In this document: positions 2,599-47,873 of the stretch, one piece after another | Position numbering within the stretch: position 1 is the stretch's first letter | How the letters are laid out: every line of letters begins with the position of its first letter | From: Cyanophora paradoxa CCMP329 | Taxonomy: Eukaryota; Plantae; Glaucophyta | Assembly (NCBI GenBank): GCA_004431415.1 | Contig: QPMI01000243.1 | Coordinates: forward strand, 44,649 to 108,648 | Direction of reading: 5' to 3' | Length of the DNA: 64,000 nucleotides | The notes under the pieces: generated by a model | Seen by the model: only the letters and a program-made list of their open reading frames with translations | Database searches by the model: none | What the model was told of the DNA's origin: nothing | Program-made: the position numbers and the translations under genes

Positions 2599-2996
2599 GC
2601 AGCCCCCTCCCCGCCCGCCTCCCTTCGGGTTCCTCCCCTGTCTGAATTCCACGTGCTGCGTGCCACGGTGATGAGAGGACCGGGGGGCAGGCCAGCCCGT
2701 GGGCCGGAAGGGGCCCGTCAGAGTCGGTCGGACTGTGGCCGAAGTATGCCTTCGATCGTGAACAAGCTAAAAAAGCTGAAGGAAAAGGCAGACCGGGAGG
2801 ACGGCAGCGGCAGCCGAAGCTCGAGTTCGCGCCCGCGGCCTACAAATCTTCAATGGAACTTCGGAATTCATGTACACTTGGCCATGGGGTCTTAAATAAG
2901 AAATACACTAGGAAATCCTGTGGGACTGTGGGCTTCGAAGGCTTCACAGCACGCTCGGCCGGGGAGGCCAGGGGGGGAGTCGGGGCCTCGGGGGCG

Positions 2997-21833: not shown

Positions 21834-23345
<1,512 letters not shown>

Positions 23346-23939
23346 GCGGGGAATTAGCCCGTTTAGTATGCACAGCTTCGACGCAGGCCGCTCCGCGGAG
23401 CTAGGCTGCGCTCTTAGGCGCGGGCTACGAACCGGAGTTCAGTTTTCGCCCTTGCTCTCCTGTAGGGGCCCCCATGTACCATTGCATAATTTGGCTTTTT
23501 CAAATGCAGGAAGGTGATTGTTCGCATTCTCACTTGTACGGGACTGTGCACTGACGTCGCATTGGGACCCGGATAGCTGGCTTCATCGCGGTGCGAGCTC
23601 GGTAGGACTAGTCGGGATAGAAGGCCGGGCCGCGGATTGCATGAAAGTGAGACTCTGCCAGGCTGTGCACTTGAGGGCCCTCGGCCCAGATCTAGAATGA
23701 AGCGCGCGCGTGTGATCACGGCCCAGAATGAAGCGCGCGCGTGTTTTTCGATTGCGAGCTGCGTAGGACGTGCGCATGCATGCGGGCCCGGGCGTTGCAA
23801 CGGTTCCTAGATTTCACCATTCTCTGAGGCCACGATTGCGGATGCATGTGAGGTCTGGGGGGCCAGCCATCGAGCACTTCGAACAGGCCGGCCAAAACAA
23901 CAGGATCGGGAAAGGGGACGAGAAAGGGTGGGAGGGAGC

Positions 23940-25630
23940 CTAAGTGGAGAGAATCTTGTACTTCTCCGCCTGGGGCACATGGTTGACGACGACGCGGCCG
24001 TCGTAGGAGACGGAAGCGAAGAGCCAGGCGTCGGCGGCGCCCCAGGCGATGCTGTAGACGCTCTCGTCGTGGTGCTCGTACTTGCAGACGAGGCCATCGC
24101 TCTGCTTCGGGGGCGTAAGCGCCTCCTCCTGCTGCGGCTCAATGCTCCCACTCGGCGTCGACGAGACGGAGAGCGCCTTCCACAGCGACACGACGCAGTC
24201 CGTGCTGCACGAAAGCAGCAACTGGTCGTGGATCCGGTTGTACCGCACACCCCACGCCCTACGGCCGCGTGTCAGCGCGCGCGAGCCGCCGGGCCGGGGC
24301 ACGAGGATGTTCGTACCAGTGGGAGTGGGCCCGAAGGGAGTTGAGGGGCGCCGCTGGCTTTCGCAGGTCAAAGAACTTGATAAGCCCGTCGTCCCCGGCG
24401 GAGCACAGGATCTGTGCAGATTAAGATCGAGCCGGGAACTTCAAACCCGGCCGGCACACCCACGGCCTGTTGGGGTTGTAGTCAACACTCCGGACACACA
24501 CACTATGTGCCTGCTCGACAGCCGCCGCGGCCCTGAAGGAAAGAATCAGATACCCGCACGAAGGAAAGGAGGGCACGACGAAATAAAAAGCGCACTTCAT
24601 GGAGCGCAGGTCCCACGTCCGCACCGCGGTGTCGCACGCGGTGGCGATCTGGTCGGTGTGGTGTGGGTCCCACGTTCCGCACCACAGCTTCTGCCCCTTC
24701 GGCGGCTGCACGCTCGAGCTCTCCTGCAACAATCCCAGTCAGCTGGAGAAGAGCGAAAAGAGGAAGCCAAACAAGGGTCCAGGGGGATCAGTAAAAATAG
24801 ATTGTTGTAATCAAAGATTATCAGTTCTGGTGCCGCGTATGACATCATGTAAAGGCCAGCAAAGGCCAAGCCCGCGAGCGGAAGGCACAAGAAAAAAAGA
24901 GCAACTTGCCGTTGGAGTGCTCTTGTTGGCGCCCAGGCCCCACATTCGCACGTTGCCCTCATCGATCGTCACGACGTATTCAGTACGGACGGGGTTCCAA
25001 AGCACCCTGCGAAAGATGTGTCAACGATACGCGCGAGGGCTGAGCGGATGGCATGCAGAGTACGAACCCTCGCAGGAACTCTCCCTTGGGGTCCAGCGTG
25101 CAACGGGGTTGCAAGGGCTGATTTACATCACCGTCGTGCCCGCCCTCCGTCAATTTCCACAAGCCAGCCTTTGTCTCGCTGCCTGGGTGGATGATGAGGG
25201 GCAATAAAGGCAATGGGTTCGCGGATGGCGCGAACCCGTGTTGTAGCAAGTGAAGAAAAGCCCCGCGTCCGAGGGGCACGGTGCTATGTCCCAGATTTCG
25301 TGTTGGTGGCTGTACACGCGTTCGCAGCGTACTTCGTTCACGTCCTCGTTGAATTGTAGCAAATGGACCTGCTTCGGAATGAGTTGCAAAAGCGTGCGCA
25401 CCAAGCGCAGCACGAACCTCGTTCTCTTCGCGCAGGTTAAGCGTGCCAACAAGAAATTTGTTGTTGTCCGTGTCTCCGACGACCGCGGAGATGCACCTAC
25501 TCTGGGACAACTGAAGTCAGGGCGGCGCGAGAATGGGAAGCCAAGAAGCGGCCGAAAGGGCGAACAAGCGCACTTGGAACTTCAAATGGTAGAGGCCGGA
25601 GGCCTGCGGGGCCCCGGCTGCGGTCGCCAT
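23940..25630 (-). CDS. EIPR1: WD40 protein EIPR1/TSSC1 (plant DWA2) homolog
   Basis: LYHLKFQSRCI..FLVGTLNLREENEVHLL..HEIWDIAPCP; VRSVDYNPNRP; HDESVYSIAW..WLFASVSYDGRVVVNHVP..KYKIL. Confidence 0.88.
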
Positions 25631-26167
25631 CGGAGCAGCCCGGCCGGCCAACGCCGCGCCGCCTCAGAGAGGTTTGGTTATGCGGAACGCTTGCAATAAT
25701 TCGAATGGAAGCGATCTGAAGCGCCCGGCCTCGCGAGGCCCTGGGCAATGGACCCTCAACTCAGGGTACAGGACGACAACCAAGTGGGGGTAGAGGCTAT
25801 TCTTGCGTGGAGCCGTTCGTGTTTTCAGCAGGTGAGTTCCCGGGCGCGCGGCGCCGCGGGAAGTCTCGGGCGCTGTCGATGTGTCGCCTAAAATGCGGAG
25901 GGGCGGTGCCCTACCTTGAGAGCAACCGCCCGCCACGTCGCGGCGCCCACCCTCCATATTTTTTCACCCAAGACGCTCCCCGCCCCTGCGGGACGTCTCT
26001 CTCCCGCCCTAGAGGCCGCCACGCGCCCCGCTAAGCCGCTACGCAAACTCCTTGCCGTCTGCGGCGCAGCTGTCCGTTCTTCATAGGAACTGCTTTCCCA
26101 TCGGCCGTGTCTAACTTCCGTGTTCCGCTCATCAGCAGAGGATCAGCTCAGCCAGCAACATCAGAAG

Positions 26168-26510
26168 ATGTCCGTCCAGCCCGGCTTTATGGTCCAGGAG
26201 CAGGTGCCGTCCCTCGTTGAAGATTGCGACTCTGGATTCTGACGTTCTTCTGATGATTTTCCAGAATGGCAAGTCCTCGGTCCGTGTCCACCACCGCCCC
26301 GGTGGCGCCAGCGACATGGGCTCGATCCTCTTCGGCGGCGCCCCCGCCGAACCCGCCAAGCCCAAGGCCGCGCCGGCTCCCGTAGAGCCCGCCAAGCCCG
26401 CTGCACCCGTCGCGCCCGCCGTCCCCGCCGAGAACAAGGAGAACCAGGCGAAGTCGAGCGTCCGTGTCCACGCTGCCCCCGGCGGCAAATCCTCCCTCGT
26501 GCTCGGCTAG
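26168..26510 (+). CDS. SPIRAL1-like small microtubule-associated protein (two RVH-x-x-PGG motifs)
   Basis: Two exons: MSVQPGFMVQEQ|NGKSSVRVHHRPGGASDMGSILFGG...KSSVRVHAAPGGKSSLVLG*. Confidence 0.75.
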
Positions 26511-26660
26511 GTAGATAGTTTCAGCATTTCAGTGGTAGTTTACAGTCTAGGTGCGGTTCTACTTTTTTGCTTGTACGTTTTTCCCATGTACCTATGCTAA
26601 CAAAACCTCTTTTTCCATCGACTGCACTGCATCGAGGCCGGCGGGCGCTTCAGTCGCCTC

Positions 26661-27431
26661 CTAGCTTTTGGCTAGGAGATCCAAAGATGGCTTGCACTCG
26701 TGCAAGAGATTGTACTGCTTGACCTGCGGGAGGGCGCACGCGAGCATTCCTCGAGCTTAGGTCGTGCCTGGCAGTTGCGAGGCGGTGCGCACGGTCTGTA
26801 TAGCCCCCGGTCCGCGTAGCGCTCGCAGCTTTTCTATTGTCGCCTCCGCCGACAGATCGGGAAATCTGCACATGATGTACACCGCCAGGACTGTTCCGCT
26901 GCGCCCCAGGCCGCCTCTGCAATGGATCAGCGACTTCCTCTCGCTTGAGCACGCCGCGTGTAGAAGCGGAAGCTGCAGGAAGGCATGTCGGGAAGACCGT
27001 CGGTTGCGAGGGGCATGCGAGCGCGTACGATGGACTTCAACTGCTCCTCAGATGGCGGCGACCCGTCCTCCATCGGGAAGTGGTGTACAGTTAGCCCTGA
27101 CGCTTTGTACTCGTCGAGAAGCGACGGTATCTTGTAGCTGGACCGAGTTTCAGAGGAGCGAAACGCGCGCACGTACGCGCAGCTTTGCTAGAGCAAGAGC
27201 GCACCGGCCTAGCTCAGAGGTCGTGCAGAGGCAGAATACTTCATCAATACCGGCCTCTCGAATCGCCTTCAGGTCGCTGACAATATTCCTCTTCACGCCG
27301 CCGTACTTCCCTCCTGGAAGCGATGAGAGCGCTATCGCTCCGGGAGCGATGGCGGGCGAGGCGAGGAACGTGATGTCGAGCGGGCCGGGCTCCGGCTTCG
27401 GCGGGCTCGTGCAGATGGACTCATCTGCCAT
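26661..27431 (-). CDS. CDKN3: CDKN3/KAP-type dual-specificity phosphatase
   Basis: LPGGKY..RNIVSDL, HHFPMEDG, catalytic HCRGGLGRS and LRALRGPGAIQTVKQYN. Confidence 0.85.
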
Positions 27432-27594
27432 GGTGGAATGACTGAGCTGTCGCGCTGCCCAGCGCTGCTGCGCTGGGCAGTGGGGGGTACAGCAGCCTCG
27501 CCAAACTCGGCGCCCGCGATTTTGCAGCCTGGTAACGTTGGCCCAGCGGACGTCGCCTTGCCGAGAGCTCGTGCAGCAAGCCGCGCTAGCGGCC

Positions 27595-30500
27595 ATGGCG
27601 ACTCCGATAGAGCGGCTGTTCGCCGAGTGGAAGGCGCTCGCTATTGAACTAGCGCTCTGGTGCTCGCTTCTCATCCGCGTCGTGGCGAGGCTGCAGCTAA
27701 CGGCACGCCGCACAGGGAGGACGAGTTCGCAGAAGTTGTCGGGAGGCATCCGACAGCGGAGGATCGGTGAGCCAATCCCGCCGGGCCCACTGCGGATCGG
27801 GCGCAGGGCAGGGCATGCGAGCTCGTCACAGCGACGCGCCGCCCCGCCCCGCAGCCTGCACGTTTGAGGCCGCAGCTCACCCGCCGGCCCGCCCCGCAGA
27901 CTGCGCGACGCGATGCGCTCCTCCCAGTACAGCCGGATGAAGCAGATCGAGGTCATTCTGCCGACAGGGAGGGACTTCGAGAGCGCCAAGGCGGCGGCCG
28001 CCGCCGCCGTCACAACCACGCGCGAGCTCCGGTGCGTCGAGCGCGGCGGCGCGGCCGGCGGGCGGCGCGGCCGACGGGCGGGGGCGCAGGAAGCGGGAGC
28101 GGGAGATGGAGCGTGCGGAGATGCTGCGGATGAGCGACCCGTACGGCCTGCCGGCGATGCCGCCGGTCACGCCCTCGAGGATCCAGGGCATGCCTCGCCG
28201 CGAGTCCATGCCTCTCATGGCGGGGGCGGGGCCCCTGCCGATGCCGGCGGCCCCGGCCCCGCTGGTGGCGGCGGGGGCGGGGGCGGCGGGGGTGCCGACG
28301 GGGGCGGAGGTGGCGGACATGGCGGAGTACCTCGGGATGAGGCTCCCCGAGGACGGCCCCTTCATGTGGATCGCGTGCGCCCGCCTCACCGGCTCGAGGC
28401 CCCGCGCTCGCCCCGTCGCTCCCAACCCGGCCCCCCGCCCGCAGGCAAGAGGCCCTCCTCGCGCCCCTGCCCCGTGCGCCGCCCCCGCCCCGCCCCCGCC
28501 CCGCCGCCCCGCCGCGGCGTTCGAGGCGGTGGCGGGCAGCGAACTGGAGCGAGCACATGGACGAGGCGGGGGGCGTGTACTACTACGACGCGGTGACGGA
28601 CAACAGCACGCGCACGCACCCAATGGACGCGTACTACCGCCAGCTCTACCTCTCCATGAAGCACGCCAGCCTCGCCAACCCCGCCCCCCGCGCACCCGCA
28701 CCCGCCCCGGCACCCGCCCCGCCCCGCCCCCGCCCCGCGCCGCCGGCCTCGGGCAGCCGACGCCGCGCGTGGGGCCGGCGGGGGCGCACGGGCGCACGCG
28801 CTGGGCCCCGAGCCCGAGGAGCACGGGCGGGGGCCCTCCCCACGCCCGCCCCCGCGCCCCAGGCGACCCCCGCCCCGCCGCCCCCCACCTCCAGCCGCCC
28901 GCCCCGGAGCCCCAGGCCCCGTCCGCCCCGCACCCGGAGCGCCCGCCGCCCTCGCCGGTGCCGCCGGGGGAGGCGCAGGCGGCGGCGGCGGCGCGGCAGC
29001 AGACGGAGCTGATCGCGGCGCAGCTGGCGCAGCAGCAGCGCGCGCAGGCGATCCTCGTCGAGCAGCAGCGCGCGCACGAGCGGCACCTCGAGGCGCAGCG
29101 CGCGGCCCAGGAGCGGCTGCAGGCGCAGCAGCGGGAGCAGGAGCGGCTGCTGGAGGCGCAGCGGGCGGCGCAGCTGGAGGCGCAGCGGGCGCAGCTGGAG
29201 GTGCAGGCGCAGCTGCAGGCGCAGATGCGGGCCCAGCAGGCGGTCCTCCAGCAGCAGGCCCAGATCCTCCTCAGGCAGCCGGCCCCCGCCGCGCCGGCCC
29301 CGGCCCCGGCCACCCCCTCGAGGCAGGGCCAGGCGCAGCAGCAGAAGCCGGGGGCGGCGGGGGCGGCGGGGGCGGCGGAGGCGTCGCTGGTGGCGCGGGC
29401 GGCGGGGCGCTACATCGAGGCGGCCCAGCGGGGCCCGCAGTTCGAGGCCGACCACTTCGCCGCCCTCGTCGCCGCCCCGAGGCCGAGGCCGCCGCCGCGG
29501 CCCCGGAGGAGGCGGAGGAGGCGCCGCCGTCGCCGCCGGCGGGGCCCTCGCTCATCGCGGTCGGGGCGAGGCGGGCGATCGACCGGGGCGGGGCGGAGCG
29601 GGAGGCCCGCGGGGCGGGGCGCAGCGCGGAGCAGGCGGCGGCGCGCGCCCTGCTCGGGGCGCCCCCGGCGAGCCCCGGGAGGCGGGCGCGCGGCAGGCCC
29701 CGCCCTCCCGGGGCGCGTCGAGCGGCAGGGGGAGCCCGCGCGGGCGCGCAAGGCGGCCCGGGCGACGGAGGAGGAGGAGGCGATCGCCGCCGTCATGCGC
29801 CGCCAGTTCCTCGCCCCCGACCCCCCGCGGCCGAGGCCGGGGCGCCCGGCGAGGCGGCCCCCGCGGCCCCGACGGCGTCCACGGCGGCCGGTGGCCCCGC
29901 GGAGGGACCCCGCTCGCCCAGGCGCCGGCCCTCGGAGCCGGCCGCGGCGCCAACGCCTGCGGAGCACGCGGTGCAGCGGCACGCGCACGCGGCGGAGAAG
30001 CCGCACGAGCCGCGGCGGGAGTCGGAGGCGCGGCGCGGGTCGGGGCGGGGCGGGGCGCGGGGTCTCGGCGGGGTCGGAGGCGGGGCGGGAGGGGCGGTGG
30101 AGCGCTTCATCGAGGGGGTCATCGGGGAGGTCTTCGAGGCCCTGGGGGGGCCCCGCCCGCCCCGCACGCTCCGGCCCCGGCCCACCCGCACGGCCACGGG
30201 GAGGAGGCGGGGCCGGGCGGGGAGGGGGCGTGGGAGGGGGTGCGGGAGCGGGTGGAGGCGCTCGTGGCCGGCTCGCTCGAGCGGCAGCTCGGCAGCGCCC
30301 CCGCCGACATCCGCGCCGCCGTCCACCGCGAGGCGAGCGCACCCCCCCTCCCCCTCCCCCTCCTGCGCCGACCGCCCCGCGCAGGTCAGCGACTACATCG
30401 CCGGCACGCTGGGCGCGGGGGCGCCAGGCCCGCTCGCCCACCCTCGGCCTGCCCCGCCGCACCCCGCCGGCCCCCAGCGGCGGCGGCGGGGCGGCGGGGC

Positions 30501-33407: not shown

Positions 33408-36400
33408 TCACGGCCAGACGGCGAGGATGAGGGGGGTGAAGAGGACGAAGAAGAAGAGGAGGATGGAGCGGGCCCAGAGGTTGAGGCGCTCCAGCCGCGC
33501 CAGGTAGAGCTCCCGCCGCCGGTACGCCAGGCGGATCCGCCCGAAGAAGAACTTGTACCTGCGCCGCCCCGCGTCAGGCCCCGCCGCCGCCACCGCAGCA
33601 GGGGGCGGGCGCGCTTCTCGTTGGCGTGGGCCTCGTAGGTCGCGAGGTCGAAGAACGGCAGCGCCTTGTGCTGCGCCCCGGGGCCCCCGTCAAGATCGGG
33701 GGCTCGAGGCGGCGCCTGGGCGGGGGCGGGGCGGGGGCGGGGCGGACGCGGGCGACGGCGTCCTCGTCGGCGGTGCTCTTCCAGTTGAAGGGGCGCGCGG
33801 CGCCGCGCTCCTGCTTCTCGGCGTCGAGCTGCTCCTGCTTGACGAGGGCGGCGTCGCGGGGCCCGACCTCCACCTCGCCCCCGTTCGTGATCACCCGGGC
33901 GACCACCGCCGGCCGCCCCTCCTCCGACGTCGACGAGCGCGGCGAGTCGGGGGCCACGGCGATGGCGGGGGCCGGGCGCTGCGCAGGGCCGGGCGGCTTG
34001 GGGAAGGCGAGGCGGGCCTCGCGCTTGTCGCGCTCCTCCTTGAGCCGCGCCATCTGCTCCTCGCGGCGGCGCTCGACCTCGAGGAGCTTCGCCTCGCGCT
34101 CCACGAGCATCCGCTCGCGCTCCTCCTGCCCGATGTCCCCCTTCATCTCCTCGGTGAGGCCGTGCATGAAGCGGATGAAGATCTGGATGGTGATCGAGAT
34201 GATGCCGATGATGTACGCGAGCATGATGTACAGCGCCATCCGCGTCACTGCCCCCATCCCGCACGCCCCGTCGGCCCCGCGCCGGCCCGCGCAGCGCGGG
34301 GGCGGGGGCGGGGGCGGCGTGCGGACCGTAGGAGACGGGCGGGGAGGCGCCCTGGACGACGAAGGAGAAGCCGAGGGTCGCCGAGATGCCCACCGCGCAC
34401 ACGCTCACCCGCCCGTCTGCCGCCCCGCGGCCCCGGCTCGGCGAGGGGCCCGGGGGGCGCGGCGGGGCGGGAGCGGACCGGACTTGAGGGGCATGAAGTA
34501 TGTGGTAAGAATTGCTAGGCAGATGAGGGCGATGGGGAAGAGGATGTTGACGCTGTTGTACGTGCTCATCCCTGCCCCGGCAGGCGCGCGAGCGCCCCGT
34601 CAGGCGCCGCGCGAGCCCGAGGGGCGGGGCGCGGGCGGCGGCGCACGGGCGGCGCGGACGGTCGTCCACAGCACGTCGAAGTTCTGCGGCGGGGAGGGAG
34701 CGTCAGCGGGCGGCGGGGGGCGGGCTTCGGCGGCCGCTCTCGTGGGCGCGCCTTGTAGATCCCTGTGAGAGGCGCGCGCGAGCGGCGTCGGCGAGGCGAG
34801 CGGGGCGCGCGGCGGGCGGGGGCGGGGCTGGCGGGGCGGCGGACCGGTCTGCTGCTTGAGGGTGAACTGGGAGTAGGAGTAGTAGCGGAACTGGCTGTCG
34901 TTGATGCTCTTCATCACGACCTCCTGCTCCGTGAGGTCCGACTGCGCGCCCCGTGGGTGAGCTCGGGGGCCGGGGCGCCGGGTCGCGAGCGGGGCGCGGG
35001 GGTGCGGACGGGGATGTAGGTGAGGTAGGAGCTGTTCCACGTGTTCGAGCGCACGCCGATCTTGAACGTCTCTGCCCGCCCGTCAGGCCCTCGACCCCGA
35101 CCCCTGCCCGGGCCCGGGCCCCAGCGCACGCGTGTCGAACGGGTACTTGGAGACTGCGCGCGAGGCGGGTAAGGGGCGTGGAGAGGGGGAGAGGGGGCCG
35201 GGGGGCGGCGGGGGCGGGGCGCGCCGTCCATCTCGGAGAAGAAGGTCTGGATGAAGCGCTTGTAGACCTTGACGGAGCCGGCGTTGGTGATCGAGACCCG
35301 CACGTCGAACTCCTGCGGCTTCTCCCGCACGTTCGTGAACCTGCCCGCCCCCTCAGCCCCGGCGGGGGCGGGGCGGGGCGGGGCGGCGCGCGTGAGGAGG
35401 GGCTCCCAGATCTTGGCGAGGACGGGGGCGTTGCCCTCGACGAGGGCCTGCTGCTTGGGGTTCGCGAAGCGCAGGTCCGTCCAGTTGTAGACCGCCGTGA
35501 TGTCCGCCTTGAAGCTCTGGTCCCGCTCCGACACCGCGAAGATCGAGTTGAACTGCAGGACGCACGAGACCAGCAGCGGCGACTCCCGCGTCAGCCTCAG
35601 CGCCAGCTGCTGCAGCGCGCGCCGCCGCGCGGGGGAGCCCGGATTGGCGGCGGCGAGGGCGAGGGTGGCGTTGGCGTCGGCGACGGGCATGCTCTCCGCG
35701 TCGTAGTCGTCGGGCGTCTCCTGCTTGTTGATGGCGTACACGAAGACGCCGGCGGAGGCCATGCTGCCGACGGGCACGGGCTCGAGCACCGCCGGCTTGC
35801 GCGTGCGCGCGTCCCGCACGAGCGCCCCGCCCGAGAGGAAGGCCGCCGTCCCGTTCACTGCCCTGGAGAGGTGAGGCGAGGGGGACGGGCGCCGAGGCCG
35901 GGGCCGGGGCCGAGGGCGGCGGGGTGCAGACCGTCGAGGGGGACGGAGACGTTGGAGCCCGGGTAGAGCTCCGACGCGTCGCCCACGCCGACCGTGCTGG
36001 CGGGCCGCGTGAGGCGGGGCGCGCGGGCGGGGGGCGGGGGCGGGCGGGCACTAGTAGAAGGTGAGGATGGAGGAGCCGGCCGAGGAGAGGACCTCGCTCG
36101 TCCTGCGAGGCGCCCGTCGGCGAGGGCCCGCCTCGGGGGGCAAGGGGCGCTGCGCGGGGAGGAGCAGCAGGCGCACAGGGTGTAGTTGACGGGCGCGGCG
36201 CGCGAGTTCATGCGCAGCCGCGGCACGATGTCTTCCCCCGGCGAGCGCGTCAGGCGAGGGGCGAGAGAGGGCGACGGAGAGGAGGAGGCGGGGGGCGGGC
36301 GGGGGCGCACTGGCGTTGGCGTTGCCGAGGCGGACGGGGCGGGAGAAGCGGACGTTGACGTCGACGACGGCGCCCTCCGTGAGGCGGCTCCCCGCCGGCA

Positions 36401-39400
36401 CCGTTGTGAACACGTCGATGATCTTGTTCCTGCCCGGGCCCGTCAGCGGCGCGGCCGCCCCGGGCGGGGCGAGCGGGGCGCACTGGAAGGTGTCCACGGA
36501 GATGGTCGTCGTGCCGGACATCAGCGAGTCCGACTCGGAGCCCGACGCGTAGTAGATCTGGCCCCGCCTCAGCCGCGCCTCCAGGGCGGCGGGGGGCTCG
36601 AGGGCGGCGGACCGTGCCGTCGATGCCGTACTCGCTGCGCTTGAGGCCGCCGGAGGAGGCGGTGGGGCGGCACAAGGCGGCGTTGCCGACGGCCCAGTCC
36701 CACAACGACTGCGAGTTGGGCGCCGCCGCCGAGACGTCGCGGTTCGCGCAGCCGTCGAAGTTCTCGAAGGGCCACCCCGCCCCGAAGCCGGCCGGGAACC
36801 AGACGCGCGCTGCGGCGCGCCGGCGTCGGCGGGGCCGGGGCGGGGGCCGGGGCGGGGCAGGGACGGGGCGGGGCGGGGCGGGGCGCACAGTTGGACTTCA
36901 TCTCCTTCGTGACGGTCACGGAGAAGAGGAGGACGTCCCGGGGGACGGCGGCCCCCGTCCTGCCCCCGCCCCGCCTCAGACCGCCCCCCGCTTGCTGCGC
37001 GCGCTACGGGCGGGGGGGGGGGGGGGGGGGGGGGCTCGCGGACCCCTGCTGCATCGTGACCTCCAGCTGCGCGGCCACAGATTCAGCGGCGGCCGCAGAC
37101 GGCAAACGCGGGAGGGGAGAGGGGCGCACGTAGCGGCTCCGGGGGATGAGCTTCGCCCGGACGTAGTTGTCGCTGCGCAGCGCGCCGCGCGGTCACGGGT
37201 TGTTCCGACCGTCGTCGCGAGCGCTTCGGGGGGCCCTGCGAACGCACGTGGCGGTCCCGTTGGCGGCTGTGCCGCCGCTCGCCGCGTCCGCCCACTCGAT
37301 GTTGGTGACGAGGGTCATGCCGCACGAGGCGAGCGCCCTGGAAGGAGGCGGCTTCGCTCGAGGGGAAGAGGAGGGGGCGGGGGCGGGGGCGGCGAGGCGG
37401 GGCGCACAGGTCGTCGAACTCGACGTCGGAGAGGATGGGGACGTCGTCGTTGGCGACCGAGCGGTCCAGCCGCTTGAAGCGCGCCACGAAGACCAGCTCG
37501 TCCCCCGGCGCGAAGACCGCCGTCCGCTGCGGCGCCGCCGTCGCGAAGCACTCCGAGGGGGCGGGCCCCTGCCCCGCCAGCGCCACCGCGTCCGCGCTCG
37601 TGTACACCTCGAACGCCACCGGCGCGATGCTGCCGCCCCGTCACGCGGCGCGGGGGGCGCTGCGGGGCCGCCGCGCGCGCACTTGATGTCGCGGGCCGGC
37701 TGGACGAGGGCCGCCTTGACGGAGCCCTCGGGGTTCGCTGCGCCGGCGGTGAGCGCGGCGAGGGCGGCGGAGCGGGGGGAGAGGCGGGGGCGGACCGTCG
37801 GAGATGCAGGAGGCGCCGGTCTCGGTGGCCGAGGCAACGTAGCTCAGCGGGTTGATGCAGCTCTGCGCGCGGTGAGGCGGCGGGGCGGGTCGCGCCCGGC
37901 AGTCGCGGGACTCACGTGGTAGCACGCGCCCTCTGCGGAGCGGAGCGTTCAGAGCGGGCGGGCGGGGCGGCCGCGAATGCGAAGATACGCACTGTCGTCG
38001 GAGGCGGTGCGGGAGGAGCGGCTGTCCACGACCTGCACGCCGCGGGGTGAGCGGCGGCCGGCAGCGCAGGGGGTCGGCCCCGGACGAGTCACCGTGAGGT
38101 TGAGGCCGGAGAGGTCGCCGGAGATGGCGAGGCCGGCGGCGGCGCTGCACTGGGCGACGGCGAGAGCCGACGCCTTGTCCACGATGGCGACGTCGCCCGG
38201 GCCGTCGGCGGCGGCGATCTTGTACGTGAACACCAGGTGGCTCGTCGCCGGGCACACCACTGGAGCGGGGCGGGGCTTGGGCGGGGCGGGGCGGGGCGGG
38301 CCGGGGCGGGGGCGGGGGCGGGCGGACCGTCGTTGTAGGCGGAGGAGAGGGCGAGGAGGGCGTTGAAGGCGGGGGAGCCCGGGGTGCCCACCTGCAGCGT
38401 CGGCTTGCACCGCCGGAACGCCACCAGGTCCATCGGGAGCCGCCGGTTGAACCTGCAGCGCCCCTCAGCAGCCGGCCCGCCGCGCGCGCCGCCCGGGGCC
38501 GGGGGAGGGGGCGCACGTGACGTCGACGGTGATGACCTGATTGCGGACGTACTCGGCGGGGTTCGCGGGGTTCGCCGAGGTGTACTCGTACAGCTGCCGC
38601 GCCCTGAGGCGGCGGAGCGGCGAGGGGGCGCACACGAGGCGGACGGACCACGGCGACGCGCTTGGGGCGGAAGGTCGCCTCCGCGTCCGCGTGCGCGCAC
38701 GGCTTGCCTGCGCGCGGGTCGAATCCCCGCGGCGCGGGGCGAGGGCGGGAGGCGCGGGGGCTCACAGCTGGGGCTCTCGGCGGACTGTGCCTCGGCGCGC
38801 ATGCGGTATGCCTCGAGAGAGGCGGGGCGGACGACGAGGCCGCCCGATGCGAGGCGCCCGACGGGCAGCGTCAGCAGCGCCGGGCGGTTGGAGCGGGCGT
38901 CGACGATGCTGGCGCCGTTCGGGTCGAGGGAGGAGCTGTTGCGGACGTCGAGGAGGACGAGGCGGCGCGAGCCGGGCACCGCCTCCGACGCGTCCCCGGG
39001 GCCCACCGCGCTGCGCCGGCTCAGCCGCGCGGGCGACCCTGGGCGAGAGGCGCGGGGGCCGCACTAGGAGAACTTGAGGAGGGAGGTGCCCTCGGGCGAG
39101 GTCTCCATCGAGCTCCTGGCGGGGGCGCGTGAGGGCGGGGGCGCGGGGGAAGGACGGGCGGGGCGCGTCGGGGCGGCGTACACGTAGGCCTCGACGGGGC
39201 CCAGCGCGCTGTTGAGGTAGAGGCGCGGCAGGCCGGCCACTGGCGGGGGGCAGCGTCAAAGCGGCGCAGCGGGGAGGGCGGGGGCGGGGCGGACGGGTGT
39301 TGGCGACGGTGACGGGGCGGGCGAACTTGACGTTGATGACGCTGCGGGGGCTCAGCGGGCGCGGGAGGGGGCCGCCGCGGGCAGCCGGCGGGGCCGGGGC

Positions 39401-42400
39401 GGAGCGCACATGACGGCGCCGTCGGAGTAGTTGCCGGCGGGCAGCGTGGTGTAGACGTCCAGGACCTTGTTCCTGCCCCCGCGCTCAGCGAGGCGCCGGG
39501 GCGGCGGGGGCGGCGGGGGGGCGCGCTGGAAGCTGTCGAAGGAGACGGAGACGCCGCCCGTGTACGCCGATTTCACCTCCGAGCCCGAGTTGTAGTAGAC
39601 CTGCGCCCCCCCGTGAGGCCGCGGCCAGCGAGGGGGCACCCCGGCCGGGGGGCGGACGTTGAGGTCGATGCCGTAGGTCGGCTCGGGGCCGGCCTTGCAG
39701 AGGGCCGGGGCGCCGGCGGACCAGGACCAGACGCCGTCGGGCGCGCGCGCGTCCACGATCGAGTTGTTGCAGCTCGCGAGGTTCGTGAAGGGGTAGCCCG
39801 GCGCGCCCCCCGAGGGGAACATGATGCGAGCTGGCCGAGCGCGGGGTCCGTGAGCCCCCAGGCCAGGGCGAGGGGCTCGGGCGCGGGCGGACGCTGGGAG
39901 AGCATGGTGCCGTCGAGCTTGGCGCTGAAGAGGAGGACGTCCTCGGGCGGGACGACCCCCTGCGCGCGCCCCCGCATCAGCCCCGTGCCCGAACACGACG
40001 GGAGGCGGGGCGCACCATGCTGCAGATTCACGGCGCAGGAGGAACGCGGAGAACGTTAGCGAGACTGTGGCACAGCGGGAAACGCCCCCGCCGGCGCACC
40101 CCTGCTGGAAGGTGACGTCGAGCTGCGGGGCAGGGGCGCGGGTCAGCGGCTGGCGAGGGCCTCGGGGCGGGGCGGGGCGGGGCGGGGCGGGGGCGCACGT
40201 AGCGGGAGCGGGGGATGAGGTCCAACTTGACGACGTGCGGCTTGCTGCGCGGGGGCGGGGGGGTTGAGGCGGGGCCCGGGGCCGGCGCGGGGCGCGGGGC
40301 CGGGGACCTCTTGGTGGAGTCGGAGTACTCGATGTTGGTGGCGAGCTGCATGCGGCAGCCGGCCTCGTGGAGGTCGGGGAAGGCCACCTCGCGCAGCACC
40401 GGCACCTCCAGGACCTGCGCCAGCTCCCCGTCCCGCGGGCTCGCCAGCGGCTTCAGCTTCCTCGACAGGCCCTTGAACTGCACCGCCACCACCAGCTCGT
40501 CCCCCGGCGAGAGCACCGTCGTCCCCGTCGGCGCCGCCGGGGCCGACGCCAGGCACGGGGCGGCGGCGGCCTCCTGGCCCACCACCGGCGTCAGGTCGTT
40601 CGCCGCGTACACCGAGAAGAGCGCCGGCGCGATGCTGCGGCCGCCGTCAGGGGGGAGCCGCGCGCTACAGGAGGGGTGGGCGGACGCGAGGGGGGCGGTG
40701 AGGTTGACGCGCGCGGCCCTGAGCACGCCCGCCGCGTTCGCTGCGCGCACTCAGCTGGGCACAAGCAGAGTTCCCAGCACTCTGTGTACCGTCCGAGATG
40801 CACGGGACGAGGTTGAGCTGGCCGACGCTGTACGAGAAGACGCCGCTGGGGCCGATGCAGGGCTGCGAGTGCGTCAGCGGGGGAGACGAGGACGTGCTCA
40901 GTGCGAGTCACCAGGTAGCACGTCTTGTCTGCGGGGGAAACAGGACTTCAGAGGGCGCGCGGAGCCACAAGAGACGGCTTCGCACCGTCGTTCGCGACGT
41001 TGACGGAGAGGCCGTCGACGACCTTCAGCGGGAGGGCCGAGAGGTCCGAGACGACGCGGACGGCCGCGGGGAAGTTGCACCCCGCGAAGGCGAGCGCCGT
41101 CGCCTTGTCCGCGATGACGATGTCGGCGTAGCGCTCCCCGGCCACGCCGCTCGCCCCGTCCAGGTCCGAGGACTCGATCTGGTAGAAGAAGGAGACGCGC
41201 CAGAGGCCCGGCTCGCCCCCGTCCCCCTTGCAGTACTCTGCGCGCACGTCAGCTCGCGCGGGAGCGGCGGGCGGGGCGCGGGCGGGCCGTCTCTGGTGGA
41301 GCGGAGGAGCGCGAACTGCCGGGTGACGCTCTTGCCGCTCGGCGAAGCGAACTGGACGGCGAGGGTCGGCTCCGTGGGGCAGATCGCGCGGTCCGCCAGG
41401 GACGGGAAGTCGACGCCGGCGGGCGTGCTGAACCTGCAAGCGTGCCCGGCGAATGAGCCCGAATGAGCACCACCAAACAAGAGCAGCGGGCGCACGTGAC
41501 GTCGATCTGGGCGACGTCGCCCTGGCGGAACTGGGCGGGGTGCTCGGGGTTGGACGACTCGTACGAGTAGACGACCGCCATCTTGACGGGCTCAATGGCC
41601 GACGCGCTCAGGCCTGCCGGGCAGCACCTGCCCGCAGGGTTAGACGAGGCGAGGCCACAGCGGGAAAAGCTGCGGGTGACTAGACGCACGCGTCCTTGTC
41701 GATGGTGACCGAGTCGATGACGCGGGCGCGGTACTGGTCCAGAAGGACGGGAGAGACGATAAGCCGGCCGGTGGACAGCTTGCCTTTGGGGAGTGTTGTG
41801 CTAGCGCTTCGCCCAGTGCGGACATCCTGCCCATTGCCCATGGCGGGTGAGGAACCGCGGGTGAGGAACTGCCCCATCATTCCTAAGAGCAGGCGGCTGA
41901 CCTGTATGACACAGCTGTTGAGCTCCAGGCGATCCACATCGAGATACGTCAGCACGCGCGATCCGACGGTCACTTCGCTGGCGTCGCTCGCGCCGACGGT
42001 GCTGTCGTATCGCCCAGTTAAACATTATGCAAAACATCGAGGGGTCTCAAACGTACTAGTAGAATGTCAGGATGCTCGTGCCCTCATCCGTGGAGGCTTG
42101 TGTGAGAGAGAACGGTATCGCCCGGCTTGTGCTCGTGACGTAGAGGAGAGGCAGGCCGGCCTCTGCAAGGCAAGGGGGCGATCGGAACGGATCAGCGAAG
42201 CCGGGACTGCTTCTGAAAAAGTTGGCGCACGTGTGTTGCCAAGCACAACGGGGCGAGCGAAGCGAAGATTGATGTCGATGATCACGCCCTCAACGTACGC
42301 GCCTTCCCTCGCTGTCGTGTAGATGTCGACGATCTTGTTCCTGCTCGAATGTGAGACCAAAAGCTAGAGCAGCACCTGGCCAGCGATATAAGCGCACTGG

Positions 42401-45400
42401 AACGTATCGACCGACGCAGTTGTGATGCCCGTGAAAATGGAGTCGACAATCGATCCAGAAGCGAACGCCACCTGCCAAAGCTGTAAGCGGATAATCTTTG
42501 AGCGGGATATCATGAGATTGAATCATGTACATCGAAGTCAATGCCGTAGGCTGAATTTCTCGTGCCGTCTTTTGGGTTACACTTTTGAATGTTGCCCTTC
42601 GCCCAATCCCTGTCGAAAACTGTCATATGCAAGCGAAAGTGTTGCGACACTGAACAAGCAGAGCGGGTAAACGCACCAGGCAGACGAATACAATCCAGCT
42701 TGAGGAACCGCAGACACGAGCTTGTTCTCGCAAGAATCGAAGTTTTCAAACGGGTAGCTCTACGAGCGCGTACGCTTAGAGATGCAGGAACCTTCTAAAC
42801 AATTTTTGACATTCACAGCGCACGGCTTGAGAGAACATCGGCGACAAGAATAGATTCGCTGCATAACGTTTAGTCCCAACTGTGAAAAAGAGACCACATA
42901 AGAAAATGAAGTGCTCACGGTTCGATTGCATATCCTCTGTTACTTTCAAAGTGAAGAGCAGAATGTTGCCCGGGATACTCGCGCCAGTTCTAATTCGAAA
43001 TCGTGAGGTACCAAGAGAGGCCATGGACAGAAAACACTGCACCCGAGTTGGAAAGTCTTGTCAGGCTGCGTTTAGACCGCACGTAAGCAAGAGCATAGAA
43101 AAAAACTGTTCGATCATTGACTGAGAGACGCACGAATTCACTGCGGGGAATAAGAAGTGCCTTTGCTGGGCCGCTCCCGTTGCTGTACTGAACGTTCAAC
43201 GCGAGCGTCATGTTGCATCCGGCTTTGAACAGGTCGTCGAAATCGATGAGCTGAAACTGCAGTTCGAGCTCCTCGACACCGATGAGACTTTTCGTTTGCA
43301 CGTCGCCTATTTTTTTCCCCAGGATTTCTCGAAGAGTGGATACGACTTTCCGCGGAGGCAGAAGCTGCTTAAATGCAACGGCGATGACAATCTCGTCTCC
43401 AACAGTGAACACAACACTTCTCTCAGGCGCTTTGCCAGACTCGAAGCAACTGCTCGTTACACGAGATTGCGAAGTCGCCAGAACCGCGCCCTTGGGAGAG
43501 TAAACACGGTACGAAGTAGGCACGATGCTACACAAGCGAAGTCAAAAATGAGAGCGTGCTTGCACACAGCCGCTGAAATAGAGGAGAACGCACACAACGC
43601 TCCTGTTGACGTTGACGCGCGCAAACTTTACAACGTTGCCAGTGATTGCTATGCAATATTGTGTCAGGCTGGATAAAACCGAACGCAACGTTAACCTCAC
43701 CTGGAAATCTTGCGTTGTTGTTCTCCCGGATGCACGTGTTGTCAACCGCGAAGATCTTTTGATCACTATCCCAAACACCCGGAAGACTCATAGGCTGCCC
43801 GTTGTTCACGCCATTCAGGAATGAAAGGACTTCCTTGTAGGGCTTCATCAAACTTTCGTAGTTGTCATCGTACGGGTCCAGTTCCGACTGCATTTCGACC
43901 GCTTTCGAGATGGCGTTGCCTGACAAGAAACCCGGTCCTCCTGGCATGCAGGGCTGCATGCACAAACCATTCAGAACAGAACTCAAAGAGAGAGCAGAAG
44001 AACAACCTCCATGTAAAAATAAAGAGAACCTTGTAGCACGAATCTTCGAAGCCGTACCGATCCCTGGCCTGTCCATCTAACACGTATAGCTCGAGAGTGG
44101 AAAGGTCGATGATCATGTTGAGCTGCTGAAGCTGACTTGAACAGGTTCCGAAGGACAGTGCTGTTGTTTTGTTCTTCACGACAATGTCGCCGTCTTTGTC
44201 GCCATCGCCAATCGTGTGGGAGAAGCGGAGATAGCTGATGGCGTAGGTTGCTGTTCAAAGTTCAGTCGACATCAGCAGTCATGACCTGTTGAACGCAATC
44301 GATTATATTGCATACTCACCGTCATTAGAAGCCTCCACAAGCGAAAATGATGCTTGAAAATCGCCCTCTCCACGCCCCACGAGCAGCGAGGCGTTGCAAT
44401 TGAGCAAATCGATACTCGAGGGCAGCGGCTTGTTAAACCTGCAAAAGTTTACAGAGGTTGTTGTCAGATGCAGGGATCGGCCAAGGATTAGAGTGCGCCG
44501 GCAACTATGCTAACGTGATCTCGACGACGATAGTCTGTCCCCGGAGGTACTCCGCAGTGTTCGACTCGTGAGAGGAGTTGTAGTTGTAGACCTGCCAATG
44601 CGTCACTCCATCTCAACCTACAACAGCAAAAGCGCCAGCACGGACCACAGAGAGACGGATAGGGCGAATGTGAGTGTCACTTGGATTTGCGAGCTGACAA
44701 TCACATCTGCCGATCGCGACGGGATTTATCGCATTTTTCTAATGAACCCAAGCTGGAAGACAAGCAGATAAACTCGAACCCGGTTGCTTTCGCATGCGCC
44801 TCTCTAAGATCGATTGATTATTAGATCATCGAAGTACGCAAAGAACGAATTAACTACACTTTCGACGCACTTGACAAACACATTGGCACCACGCGCCTTC
44901 TCAACGATACTGCCCTGACCGCCAGTAGCAGGGCACTCGCATCTGCAGTATGTGCAGAAGTCCCTGCCAACAGATAAGCTTGCGCATACAATGCACGCGC
45001 TCAAGGGATCCGTACTCAGGTGCATCTTCCTGTGGATTGACAGAAGGAATATCCGTATACGTTTGTCATCGACTTCGATACGAAATTCACCACAGAGACA
45101 CACAGACCTTCGTGCACACTCCACAGTAATTCTCCATATAGGGGTTGAACGTTCTGAAGTTCCTTGAATCACACTGTACAGGTTAAACGTGATTGAGCAA
45201 TAAATTTAGCGCTCTGTGGAAATGACTTAGGAAGCTATTGCGAGCCTGGCACTTGGAGTTCATGTCAGAGTAGTCAATGCCATGATTCCAGCACACGTCG
45301 CAGTACTGTTTGCGGTTTAGCTCTCGCCTAAACAAAGGGACCAGGCAGAGAGAGCGATCCTCGCCTTTGAATACTGGATGTAGTACTTCATGCCTTGGGG

Positions 45401-46807
45401 ATCCGCCGGGAACGTTGTCATCAGCTTGGGGTATTCCGGACCTTCATTCGCTGTACCAAACCTGGAATGATGCCAGGGTGAACCAAAGATGACAAGCGAG
45501 TGAAGCTGCAAGCGAACCCGTAGTACTCGCTTAGGGTTAACTCTCTCTCGGTACGGTTGTTGTAGAAGTAGACCATGTACTTCGCCGGCTCGTACGAGGA
45601 GTGGCATGACTTGCAGAATTCTAGACTGCTCTCATCGGCATCCCAAAAGTCTTGGAAGACCATAGCCTGCACAGGGTTCGCGATTGATCAGGTATTAAAA
45701 ACCAGGTGGGGTGGGGGGGGGGGGGGTGGGGTGGGAATGGGGAAGAAACTGAAGGGAGAAAGAAGGGGGGGGGGGGGGGGGGGGGGGGAGCGGGGGGCAA
45801 ACCTCGAGGAAGGGATAATCGTAGTCATCTGTTTCCGAAGTGGATTTGTCAATAGCCCATAGGATCGGTGAGATTGTGCTGTGTGGATATGATTGGCGAA
45901 ACTTCAAGGTCGATCAAAAAGTTTCATACTTATAGTCGATCGGATACGCAGAAGTGAGGTCGTAATACCAAGAACCCTCATCGGATTCATACCACTCATG
46001 CCCCTCGGGAATCATCCATTCGCCGAAGTCTGTGTCAAAAACTGTGTTACCGTCGTAGTTCCCACTCGTCAACTCGAATGCAAATTCCGTCGATCCTAAG
46101 TCGTTTGGGTCCCACGGATTCGTGATGCCGCCAGGATAGCGCGTGACATTGTTGACTGAGGACCGATCCAGCCACACATCAACCGCGGCCCCGGTAGAGT
46201 TCACGGGCCAGGAATCGACAGTCCAGCTGGTCGGGTCGTCCACAGGGTCGTACGCGGCCGGCAGCTCCTTCCAAAGCGAAACGGGGCAACCCGGATACGG
46301 GACCCACCAGCAATACAATTGCGGATTCTCGCATGTTCCTGAAGGAAGAGCACGAAAGTTAAGTCAGCAGCGGTGACAGATCTAGAGTGCGCGCGGAGGG
46401 GGAGGGGGGGGGGGGGGCGATCGGGAGGAGACCGGGGGGCGGGGGGGGAGAGAGAGGGGGGTAGGGGGATAAGGCGCAGAACAAGCGGATACCCGGCAGA
46501 GGAAGGCGGGGTCTCCGATGGGATACAGGGAAAATAATGAAGCACGGGCAAGGGGGGGGGGTACGCTACAGGATAGTGGCGCGTGGGACTAGGTGATGGG
46601 GGCTAGGGACTGAAGACTGGAGGGTTACGGACGCGCACCCCATTTGGCGCCATCGATGCGCACTGCTGCCGTTAGTAACAAAAGCACCAATAGCTGCACG
46701 GCTCCGCTAGAGCCGCCTCTCTGCATGCAAACCGTTAGGGCGGGAAACTGGCTTGAATCCAAGGAAGCGCTAGGCACTAGCGAGGCGGCAGGACTTGCCA
46801 TCCCCAT
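33408..46807 (-). CDS. Giant Cys-less (Pro-loop) pentameric ligand-gated ion channel subunit with signal peptide, Cys-rich head and three tandem macro-repeats of Ig-like adhesin-type modules
   Basis: Ligand-binding domain SFKADI..WTDLRF..IWEP...FTN..GSV..YKRF..FFSEMDVSKYPFDTQTF; M1 NILFPIALI; M2 DGRVSVCAVGISATLGFSFVV..PPVSYVT; M3; M4 NLWARSILLFFFVLF; repeated exon motifs NK(I/V)xD(I/V)(Y/F)TT and YGID occur three times upstream; continuity of the 5' low-GC exons is less certain. Confidence 0.8.
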
Positions 46808-46833
46808 TCTTTGACGAGAAGGCGCTCCGCGAA

Positions 46834-46899
46834 TGTTGACACGCGTGCTGTGGGACTGGTAAGCATTTAAGCGCTGTTGACACGCGCGCTGTGGGACTG
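46834..46899. repeat. Direct repeat of a 25-bp unit immediately upstream of the channel gene start
   Basis: TGTTGACACGCG(T/C)GCTGTGGGACTG at 46834-46858 and 46875-46899. Confidence 0.8.
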
Positions 46900-47873
46900 C
46901 TCACGTCTGTTAACTCACAGGGGCGAGCAACTCACAGGGTCGGCGCTGTGTGTCTTATCCGCAGAGCAATCTGCGGCCGCGCTCAGTGATTATTATGATG
47001 AGGCCGCAATCTTCTCATGTCTAGCGCCTCGAACTCGAGCTCTTATCTAAGCTGTGGCTGGAGAGGACCTGGGCCGTCGTAGCACAGGTGCCGAACAGCT
47101 TCTGCCGTAGATTTACCGGGTCGCTTCGCCCACTAACCGCTGTTCGCTCTGTACATGCATATGTGTGAGCCTGCTAGCGCCTGTAACGGGCGGCGCTGCC
47201 CGCTGGACACGAGCACTCACCGGCAGCACGTGGAAGATGGGTGGGAATCACGCCTGCAAAGCACGCCTGCAAAGCGCCTGCAAGCGTTTGAGATAAGGCC
47301 TAGGGTGGCGGTAGAATCCGAATGGAGAAGAGGCGAGCTAGTCCATCACAACGCTCATCGGGCGACAAGGAAGCGCCCAACTTGCGGCCCAAGCATACGC
47401 CGTGCGGGCACGCTTGAGCCCCCGCTTTCCCTTCAGCTGGCGGGCCTCAGGGCCTCCCAACTATCTTTTGCGCACCGACGACACGATTGCCGCCGGTGAC
47501 TCCGCTCGCCTCTGCCCGCTCGTGGACTTCGTTGGCGGCAGCTGAGCCGCAGCTCTTGTCCCCGGGTACGCGCGCTGGCGCCAAAAAAACCCGAGACGGA
47601 ACCTCGAGCTCGACGTCGACGTCGACGTCGACGTCGATCGCGATCGACTTAAGGCTTCGAAAAATTCGCTGCTTCAATACATTAATCGGCGGCCGCCGGC
47701 CGCGGGGGGACCAGGGGACCGGCGGGGCCGCGGGGGTGCATGCGCTAGCGCTACGCAGCAGTCCGGTCAACGCTCGAACAAACGCTGCGAGTGTCTGTCT
47801 CTGTGACAACTGCAGCCTGCCTGGAGAACGCGGAAAGCTAGGCAGCCTAGAAAAGCAACGCTCGCGCTCAAGC

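Follow-up and report, generated by a model that had tools for sequence, protein, structure and literature searches.

Ion channels of the pentameric, ligand-gated type (pLGICs) form one of the best-studied receptor families; a subunit of the textbook kind is 300-500 residues long and, once mature, opens with the ligand-binding domain (LBD). To our knowledge, the only accessory N-terminal domain of a pLGIC to have been studied so far is that of the bacterial channel DeCLIC, and its role is still unclear. The DeCLIC domain is flexible and modulates gating (PMC9897478, PMC12664993). Channels of the Pro-loop type that lack the Cys pair have been described from prokaryotes and protists (GLIC, ELIC; Jaiteh et al. 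2016), green algae included (PMC4795631). We have analyzed a stretch of 64,000 nucleotides (the window, whose numbering is used throughout) from the glaucophyte alga Cyanophora paradoxa CCMP329 (contig QPMI01000243.1, positions 44,649 to 108,648). Its minus strand contains what is very probably a single, real, and expressed gene for a Cys-less ("Pro-loop") pLGIC subunit with a giant N-terminal ectodomain, a judgment that covers both the identity of the gene and its architecture. An earlier note, made by reading the letters of the same DNA, had proposed a channel of this kind with adhesin-like repeats, and our analysis confirms what it observed and supports its interpretation in part.

Gene Structure and Expression

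The window is GC-rich eukaryotic DNA, and between 46807 and 33408 stop-free coding pieces of the minus strand alternate with short GC-rich spacers coding for Pro, Arg, and Ala. The gene runs from an ATG at 46807 to a stop codon at 33410-33408, both of which the earlier note had placed correctly, and the transcript extends to at least ~33175 in the 3′ untranslated region (UTR) and probably to ~47060 in the 5′ UTR. The predicted protein consists, in order, of a signal peptide, a Cys/Trp-rich head of ~330 residues, three macro-repeats of ~600 residues each, the LBD, and the membrane segments M1-M4 with a long M3-M4 loop (Table 1).

An exhaustive HMMER search with the segment 35858..35007 identified a public model of the gene (EukProt Cyanophora paradoxa tig00001030_g6472.t1, hereafter P0001; 2,611 residues, E=1e-115), which bears out the glaucophyte origin proposed from the sequence. 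P0001 matches 46015..33411 exactly and collinearly in 73 blocks plus one micro-exon of 11 nucleotides. A script placed 68 of its 73 junctions, 61 as GT-AG and seven as GC-AG introns, with a median intron length of 62 nucleotides. A search for contigs encoding P0001 found none.

The gene is heavily spliced and expressed. Contigs of three studies (runs X1, X5, and X8, each labeled "RNA? (a guess)") were aligned to 33408-39400 of the window, where they skip 43 short intervals; each of the 15 intervals listed can be placed as a minus-strand GT..AG or GC..AG intron of 54-79 nucleotides that has G[TC]NCGC as its donor and a CTGAC-like branch. Because a DNA-like run (X13) retains the intervals that X1, X5, and X8 skip, the latter are taken to hold spliced RNA. 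A spliced contig of 8,816 nucleotides is present in X1 and X5 (two independent studies), with shorter contigs in X8 (the third); it begins 233 nucleotides past the stop codon, crosses the channel, the junction, and the whole of macro-repeat 3 to reach 39010, and continues for another 5,018 nucleotides upstream. Contig positions 234-3798 correspond to 33408-39010 and comprise 3,565 nucleotides, identical to the sum of the P0001 exons over that interval, so that some 38 introns are confirmed at once.

The repeats and the channel belong to one transcript and, at their junction, to one reading frame, because a single exon (35858..35391) holds parts of both and is unbroken in all three RNA runs. 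This exon matches Neur_chan_LBD on its own (E=3e-4). The earlier note had singled out the possibility that transcripts would separate the repeats and the channel into two genes; the spliced contigs of all three studies instead cross the shared exon in one frame.

At the 5′ end, P0001 begins at an internal Met (46015) and is without the predicted exon 1, which codes for the signal peptide, and 108 codons of exon 2. The first exon of P0001 has no stop upstream of 46015 as far as an acceptor whose end is at 46339 (CTGAC branch, pyrimidine tract, CAG), and the N-terminal extension of 164 residues splices in frame, lengthening the protein from 2,611 to 2,775 residues. The subunit is a giant one, as the earlier note had said, and smaller than its estimate of about 3,000 residues. 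The 747 nucleotides of contig upstream of the P0001 Met equal 492 coding nucleotides plus ~255 nucleotides of 5′ UTR, and the 5,018 upstream nucleotides equal 4,763 coding nucleotides plus the same ~255; both sums are consistent with the model and are no proof of it.

Hydropathy analysis indicated a hydrophobic core at residues 36-49 of the 2,775-residue model, which fits the signal peptide proposed earlier; a start at Met28 would give a canonical one. No hydrophobic segment was found by hydropathy between the signal peptide and M1. Sequence searches were made with exon sequences and with P0001, whereas the extension of 164 residues entered the analyses of hydropathy and composition. Because there is a signal peptide at the front and no such segment before M1, and because complete relatives open with a signal peptide followed by an Ig-like module (see below), the ~2,400 residues before the LBD are predicted to be extracellular.

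The introns are very short (49-136 nucleotides) and reach 93% GC. The GC-AG introns, seven of the 68 resolved, have GCGCGCC-type donors (33559-33614, 35154-35224, 35341-35391, 39473-39526, 41238-41287, 45174-45245, and 45306-45364), and RNA joints confirm two of the seven. There are also micro-exons of 11, 15, and 17-18 nucleotides, such as those at 34752-34762, 45015-45029, 40912-40929, and 37916-37930; that of 11 nucleotides is supported because the exon sum matches the length of the RNA contig exactly. A 4-nucleotide exon of the public model near 40016-40019 looks doubtful. A gene model of our own, built by dynamic programming on splice sites and codons, recovered most of the GC-rich exons, but it over-spliced exons confirmed by RNA and failed in the low-GC part, and P0001 was preferred.

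Table 1. Position and basis of the features of the giant pLGIC gene (window coordinates; GC3, GC content at third codon positions; HMM, hidden Markov model; pLDDT, predicted local distance difference test; R1-R3, macro-repeats 1-3)
Feature	Position	Strand	Description and basis
Whole coding region	33408..46807	-	~75 exons, 2,775 codons; collinear map of P0001, RNA contigs over 33408-39400, in-frame join of exon 1 to exon 2
Exon 1 (predicted)	46639..46807	-	169 nucleotides; start codon and signal peptide; donor GTGCGC at 46638, in-frame join to exon 2; not in public model
Cys/Trp-rich head	44706..46338	-	Full-length residues ~57-388; ~10 exons; composition
Macro-repeat 1	41722..44699	-	P0001 225-877; BLASTP to R2 E=1e-89, to R3 E=1e-76; low-GC island, exon GC3 ~0.6
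Putative module A, repeat 1	44102..44651	-	P0001 241-357; module C HMM E=0.006
Putative module C, repeat 1	41761..42411	-	P0001 733-864; Big_12/Big_5-like; bacterial tandem domains matched by BLASTP (E as low as 5e-10)
Macro-repeat 2	38797..41688	-	P0001 889-1495; BLASTP to R3 E=2e-125, 39% identity
Putative module A, repeat 2	41161..41578	-	P0001 905-1006; alone weak against module C HMM (E=0.16); hhalign of A with C
Putative module C, repeat 2	38836..39540	-	P0001 1347-1482; BLASTP to P0016/P0017 E=9e-11; carries tail motif quoted in the earlier note
Macro-repeat 3	35739..38699	-	P0001 1509-2084; wholly under spliced RNA contig; AlphaFold model
Putative module A, repeat 3	38099..38666	-	P0001 1520-1646; module C HMM E=6e-5; AlphaFold beta-sandwich, pLDDT ~80; VIA Z 5-6 to Ig/FN3-like domains
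Putative module C, repeat 3 (C3)	35748..36497	-	P0001 1944-2081; adjoins LBD; AlphaFold pLDDT ~80; VIA to SbsC, invasin, InvE, and FdeC, Z ~5-6
Junction exon	35391..35858	-	156-codon single open exon: end of C3, linker, first LBD strands; continuous in X1, X5, and X8 contigs
LBD	34645..35633	-	Seven exons, including 24-nucleotide Pro-loop exon 35153..35130 and 11-nucleotide micro-exon 34762..34752; Pfam and PDB matches
M1 and M2	34327..34571	-	M1 exon 34571..34479, M2 pore-helix exon 34416..34327; hydropathy, alignment with GLIC M1-M2, RNA joints
M3 and long charged intracellular loop	33748..34247	-	Loop ~185 residues; GLIC alignment, hydropathy, AlphaFold
Last two exons	33408..33670	-	Pre-M4 helix, M4, stop; RNA joint 33614..33559 (GC-AG); hydropathy

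Channel Domain

The C-terminal part of the protein has the marks of a complete Cys-less pLGIC, as the earlier note had concluded from its Pro-loop and M1-M4. The Pfam family PF02931 (Neur_chan_LBD) matches P0001 2136-2295 (E=2.4e-17; 63.5 bits against a cut-off of 26). The outcome for the second Pfam model that the note had suggested, Neur_chan_memb, was weak: a match at E=0.1 on the M3 exon, and none at E<=0.01 on the whole of P0001. Among solved structures, GLIC, ELIC, and their chimeras are the best sequence matches, from beta1 to M3 (E 1e-13 to 1e-15). An AlphaFold model of P0001 1930-2611 has a pLDDT of ~80 over the LBD and M1-M3, with a long M3 helix followed by a loop that is highly charged and then disordered; with probability 1.0 and E values as low as 5e-20, its fold matches comprise structures of GABA-A, glycine, and nicotinic receptors, of GluCl, and of DeCLIC. 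Four hydrophobic segments (M1-M4) lie within residues 2483-2775 of the 2,775-residue model and appear as helices at 393-412, 419-441, from 445, and at 645-679 of the AlphaFold model.

The Pro-loop between beta6 and beta7 reads ..SKYPFDTQ.., with P, F, D, and Q invariant across nine relatives, and there is no Cys in P0001 between ..FFSEMD.. and ..FKIGV... Because the Cys pair that would flank the loop is absent, the receptor is assigned to the Cys-less Pro-loop class (in the sense of PMC4795631), not to the metazoan Cys-loop subfamily. An alignment of the nine relatives has 45 invariant columns, all of which are retained in P0001 (45/45); they include WxD, IWxP, PFDxQ, the pre-M1 Arg, the M1 Pro, the 0′ Arg, and PPVxY of the M2-M3 loop. 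With the pore register fixed by Arg at 0′ and Pro at 23′, the residues that face the pore are Asp -2′, Ser 2′, Val 6′, Ser 9′, Gly 13′, and Phe 16′. The acidic residue at -2′ in this alignment suggests cation selectivity, by analogy with GLIC.

A basic motif (RRR, P0001 2122-2124, window ~35620-35628) stands at the start of the N-terminal helix of the LBD and corresponds to R-x-R/H in the relatives. The motif may serve for dibasic processing, or its role may be no more than structural.

Extracellular Arm

The first 388 residues of the full-length model contain 17 Cys and 14 Trp, in keeping with the Cys/Trp-rich head described earlier; this head has no Pfam family match and no usable match in the ESM Atlas. 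The three macro-repeats that follow are 33-39% identical to one another in pairwise comparison (BLASTP E 1e-76 to 1e-125), much more than chance would give, and their limits fall within ~100 nucleotides of those previously given. Of the 16-19 intron positions in each, 11 are common to all three, which shows that the macro-repeats arose when a block of some 16-19 exons was duplicated in tandem.

Each macro-repeat comprises two supported immunoglobulin-like (Ig-like) modules, termed A and C, and, besides these, ~300 residues that could not be assigned, part of which contain Cys. Module C, which takes up the final ~135 residues, is homologous by BLASTP (E 1e-5 to 1e-10) to bacterial tandem domains in proteins (P0015-P0019) with features of the dockerin, NHL-propeller, or autotransporter type. 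In these arrays, two of the copies that were aligned score 22.7 and 19.2 bits with Pfam Big_5, just under the cut-off of 23.6, and other copies score 45.3 and 26.2 bits with Big_12; module C is linked to Big_12 and Big_5 transitively, and in part by scores under the threshold. Module A, with which each repeat opens (~130 residues), is related to C (94% and E=1e-7 by hhalign of the three-copy A profile with the C profile). A consensus is common to the bacterial domains, to modules C, and, less strongly, to modules A: ..G.Y..G..I.I.V.FS.PV.V.G.P.L.LN....A.Y.SG.GT.TL.F.Y.V..G.....LD......L.LNGG.I.D..G..A.L.LP.

Segments B and D showed no significant likeness to A or C (hhalign 0.1-8%), and B and D none to each other. 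The proposal of about three like modules per repeat accordingly holds for A and C, which have statistical support, and was dropped for the middle module B, which has no significant likeness to either. AlphaFold models both A and C of repeat 3 as beta-sandwiches with a pLDDT of ~80, and the ESM Atlas neighbors are annotated as Big_5, Big_12, Big_13, or SWM_repeat. The likeness to the Ig-like repeats of bacterial adhesins that the earlier note had drawn is thus upheld for two modules per repeat by BLASTP and hhalign. The predicted Ig-like fold of the repeats fared less evenly: the A and C models agree with it, whereas their structural matches are generic (Z 5-6) and the middle ~300 residues have a pLDDT of ~30. 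The protein is therefore predicted to carry bacterial-type Ig-like modules, two per repeat and six in all.

Several searches with the arm were blank. Foldseek with the 602-residue repeat model, a multi-domain query half of which is of low confidence, returned nothing at E<=0.001; its best row was a Chlamydomonas mastigoneme protein (E=3e-3). A word-indexed search with the first 457 residues of repeat 2 found only P0001 itself, a blank that is uninformative. The feature search of the ESM Atlas with the middle of the repeat gave no usable match, the module C profile had no match at E<1 among PDB sequences, DeCLIC included, and Pfam gave nothing on the repeats or on the N-termini of the paralogs.

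A low-GC island (window 42000-47500; GC 0.47-0.57, versus 0.70-0.77 on either side) spans the 5′ third of the gene. Near 42 kb, over ~1 kb, there is a steep rise in exon GC3 (~0.6 to ~1.0) and in intron GC (~0.45 to ~0.85), with exons 46015..42059 on the low side and 41623..33411 on the high side. Low-GC repeat 1 is nonetheless homologous to the high-GC repeats 2 and 3; a boundary of GC-biased gene conversion is one idea for the shift. A second region of lower GC (0.61-0.63) lies at 22000-28000 of the window, and compositional patchiness may be general in this genome.

Relatives and Family

The HMMER search that identified P0001 also found three Cyanophora paralogs (1,019-1,243 residues), a protein of Colponema vietnamica (806 residues), an MMETSP transcript (748 residues), Logan and metagenome proteins, and fragments; the search for paralogs and protist relatives that the earlier note had suggested was in this way productive. 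The Cyanophora paralogs are only ~30% identical to the giant protein. A copy of module C directly precedes the LBD in every relative whose sequence reaches far enough upstream: the three paralogs, Colponema, the MMETSP transcript, and a Logan contig. Most relatives have a KFPPxGYDP-like linker between module C and the LBD, and a second, weaker module is present upstream in most. In the complete relatives a clear signal peptide is followed immediately by an Ig-like module. A search with the family alignment found two unrelated Ig-repeat proteins, and this blank, too, is uninformative.

These comparisons point to a protist family, spread across distant eukaryotes, that is made up of a signal peptide, one or two Ig modules, and a Cys-less pLGIC, with the giant gene as its extreme expansion. 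By the same comparisons, the membrane-proximal Ig module is the ancestral N-terminal domain of the family, on top of which ~1,900 further residues have been stacked here. Annotation seems to truncate 5′ ends in this family: P0001 and the three paralog models all start without signal peptides.

Mechanism and Alternative Explanations

Several observations weigh against the architecture as we describe it. Exon 1 is a prediction from sequence, and the 5′ 7.8 kb (39010-46807) is joined to the rest through the public model, repeat homology across the boundary, and length arithmetic. The RNA nature of X1, X5, and X8 rests on the absence of introns, their labels being guesses, and five of the 73 junctions of P0001, which involve micro-exons, were left unplaced by the script. 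About half of each macro-repeat (module B, segment D, and linkers) matches nothing and has a pLDDT of ~30 in the AlphaFold model of repeat 3. The repeats of P0001 have no match to any Pfam Ig model even at E<=5, and the structural matches of the Ig modules are generic, with Z under 8 (best 5-6) and with FN3 receptors and other sandwiches among them. In this gene the KFPPxGYDP linker motif is degenerate, and 9′ is Ser in the alignment, which is atypical compared with the usual Leu.

An artefact of annotation or assembly would explain the architecture away, either as two neighboring genes (a repeat protein and a channel) that have been merged or as a contig that is chimeric at the GC boundary near 42 kb. 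The sharp shift of GC3 within the gene, from ~0.6 to ~1.0, would fit this, as would a 5′ part that is tied to the rest through gene model, homology, and arithmetic. Against it, one exon holds repeat and channel and is crossed by spliced contigs of three studies; the homology of low-GC repeat 1 to repeats 2 and 3 extends over all of repeat 1, and the boundary falls inside a run of conserved exons; and the same order of module and channel recurs in relatives of other phyla. Such an artefact is essentially excluded for the junction of repeats and channel and unlikely elsewhere in the gene, and overall we give it almost no credence.

For the gene as a single giant channel subunit, a mechanism can be outlined. 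Five subunits would form a cation-permeable pore (Asp -2′, Arg 0′), as in the studied members of the family, and gating would go through the canonical LBD, whose family-invariant residues are all retained. The five long arms would bind an extracellular macromolecule or a surface, and the conserved proximal Ig module would couple binding by the distal arm to the LBD, by analogy with DeCLIC. We offer this coupling tentatively, as a possibility with the odds against it. The wider proposal is more speculative, and we think it improbable in full: that eukaryotes have an as yet undescribed class of pLGICs, with this protein as its extreme member, in which a stimulus of a macromolecular, contact, or mechanical kind, captured by Ig-like arms (possibly a built-in, hair-like appendage of the surface or flagellum), would drive or set the gating, and not a diffusible transmitter alone, with modules that perhaps came from bacteria.

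That the channel is contact-, glycan-, or mechano-gated, as the earlier note had suggested, is a hypothesis. The arms might also act more directly. Anchored to an outside structure (a particle, the substrate, another cell, or a coat of the flagellum or surface), they could transmit force that opens the pore, which would make the protein a mechanosensitive pLGIC. We know of no force-gated pLGIC, which counts against this idea; so does the retention of all LBD invariants, which favors a conventional binding site, and short relatives with one or two modules could hardly act as tethers. In its favor, five arms of ~2,400 residues made of serial beta-sandwich modules would suit a force-bearing tether, Ser in place of the hydrophobic 9′ Leu would lower the barrier to gating, and an algal channel of the transient receptor potential (TRP) type, PKD2, is tied to extracellular Ig-rich filaments (PMC7265326). 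Gating by a tether is, on this balance, unlikely. It is unlikely, too, that the protein is in the main a structural or adhesive component of a surface coat or hair, in which the pLGIC part would be a pentamerizing membrane anchor and conduction secondary or lost. The ectodomain makes up 87% of the protein, the best row in the Foldseek search with the repeat model, a weak one (E=3e-3), is the Chlamydomonas mastigoneme, and this paralog has the atypical 9′ residue and the degenerate linker motif; yet a mere anchor would not need the family invariants (pore 0′ Arg, Pro-loop, M2-M3 loop), all of which have been kept over a long divergence (identity ~30% to the paralogs and 33-39% among its own repeats). 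We think it quite improbable that the protein is a precursor that is cleaved between ectodomain and channel, for instance at the basic stretch preceding the LBD, with the ectodomain then shed or held noncovalently. The basic motif just before the LBD is family-wide (RRR here, R-x-R/H in relatives), and Chlamydomonas PKD2 is reported to undergo proteolytic processing (PMC2064795), but the AlphaFold model puts the motif inside the N-terminal helix of the LBD, where it is more likely to be structural.

Comparison with Known Systems

The earlier note knew of no described channel with this architecture. That statement stands insofar as the literature, with incomplete coverage, yielded no eukaryotic pLGIC reported to carry an accessory ectodomain, none with one of this size, and none from Cyanophora; it needs qualifying because the gene model is already public, as an uncharacterized protein, because three shorter paralogs exist, and because other protists have an Ig module joined to a pLGIC and bacteria have DeCLIC. 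Known too are protist pLGICs and bacterial pLGICs with N-terminal domains as such. Together with its shorter protist relatives, the giant gene shows that accessory ectodomains are a recurrent, evolvable feature of pLGICs, and the proteins make up a natural, graded series in which the coupling of such domains to gating can be studied. A further idea is that, in a free-living flagellate alga, the scaffold of a transmitter receptor came to serve for sensing surfaces, polymers, or force.

Pentameric channels of the GLIC/ELIC type share with the Cyanophora protein the beta-sandwich of the LBD, the Pro-loop without a Cys pair, M1-M4, the 0′ Arg, and a Pro-rich M2-M3 loop. They have nearly nothing before the LBD, compared with ~2,400 residues here, and the Cyanophora protein has a long M3-M4 loop of the eukaryotic type and Ser at 9′. 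DeCLIC, which is among the fold matches of the channel model, also has an extra, beta-rich extracellular domain N-terminal to the LBD. Its domain is bacterial and has ~300 residues in two lobes, and no sequence relation to the Cyanophora modules was found; the Cyanophora ectodomain is eukaryotic, ~8 times longer, and built of Big_12/Big_5-like Ig modules in tandem.

The bacterial domains Big_12 (PF19078), Big_5/SbsA_Ig (PF13205), and SWM_repeat (PF13753) resemble modules C, and more weakly A, in their consensus and, to judge from the structural models, in a beta-sandwich fold. They occur in S-layer, autotransporter, or dockerin contexts, whereas the Cyanophora modules lie in spliced exons, are joined to an ion channel, and fall under the Pfam thresholds. 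Outside the pLGIC family, a parallel in design is found in polycystin-1 and in the Chlamydomonas PKD2-mastigoneme complex (PMC7265326), in which a huge Ig-like array outside the cell is attached, through a covalent bond or otherwise, to a channel subunit that is thought to sense contact or flow. These channels belong to an unrelated, TRP-like tetrameric superfamily and have Ig domains of other types, so the resemblance is one of design only.

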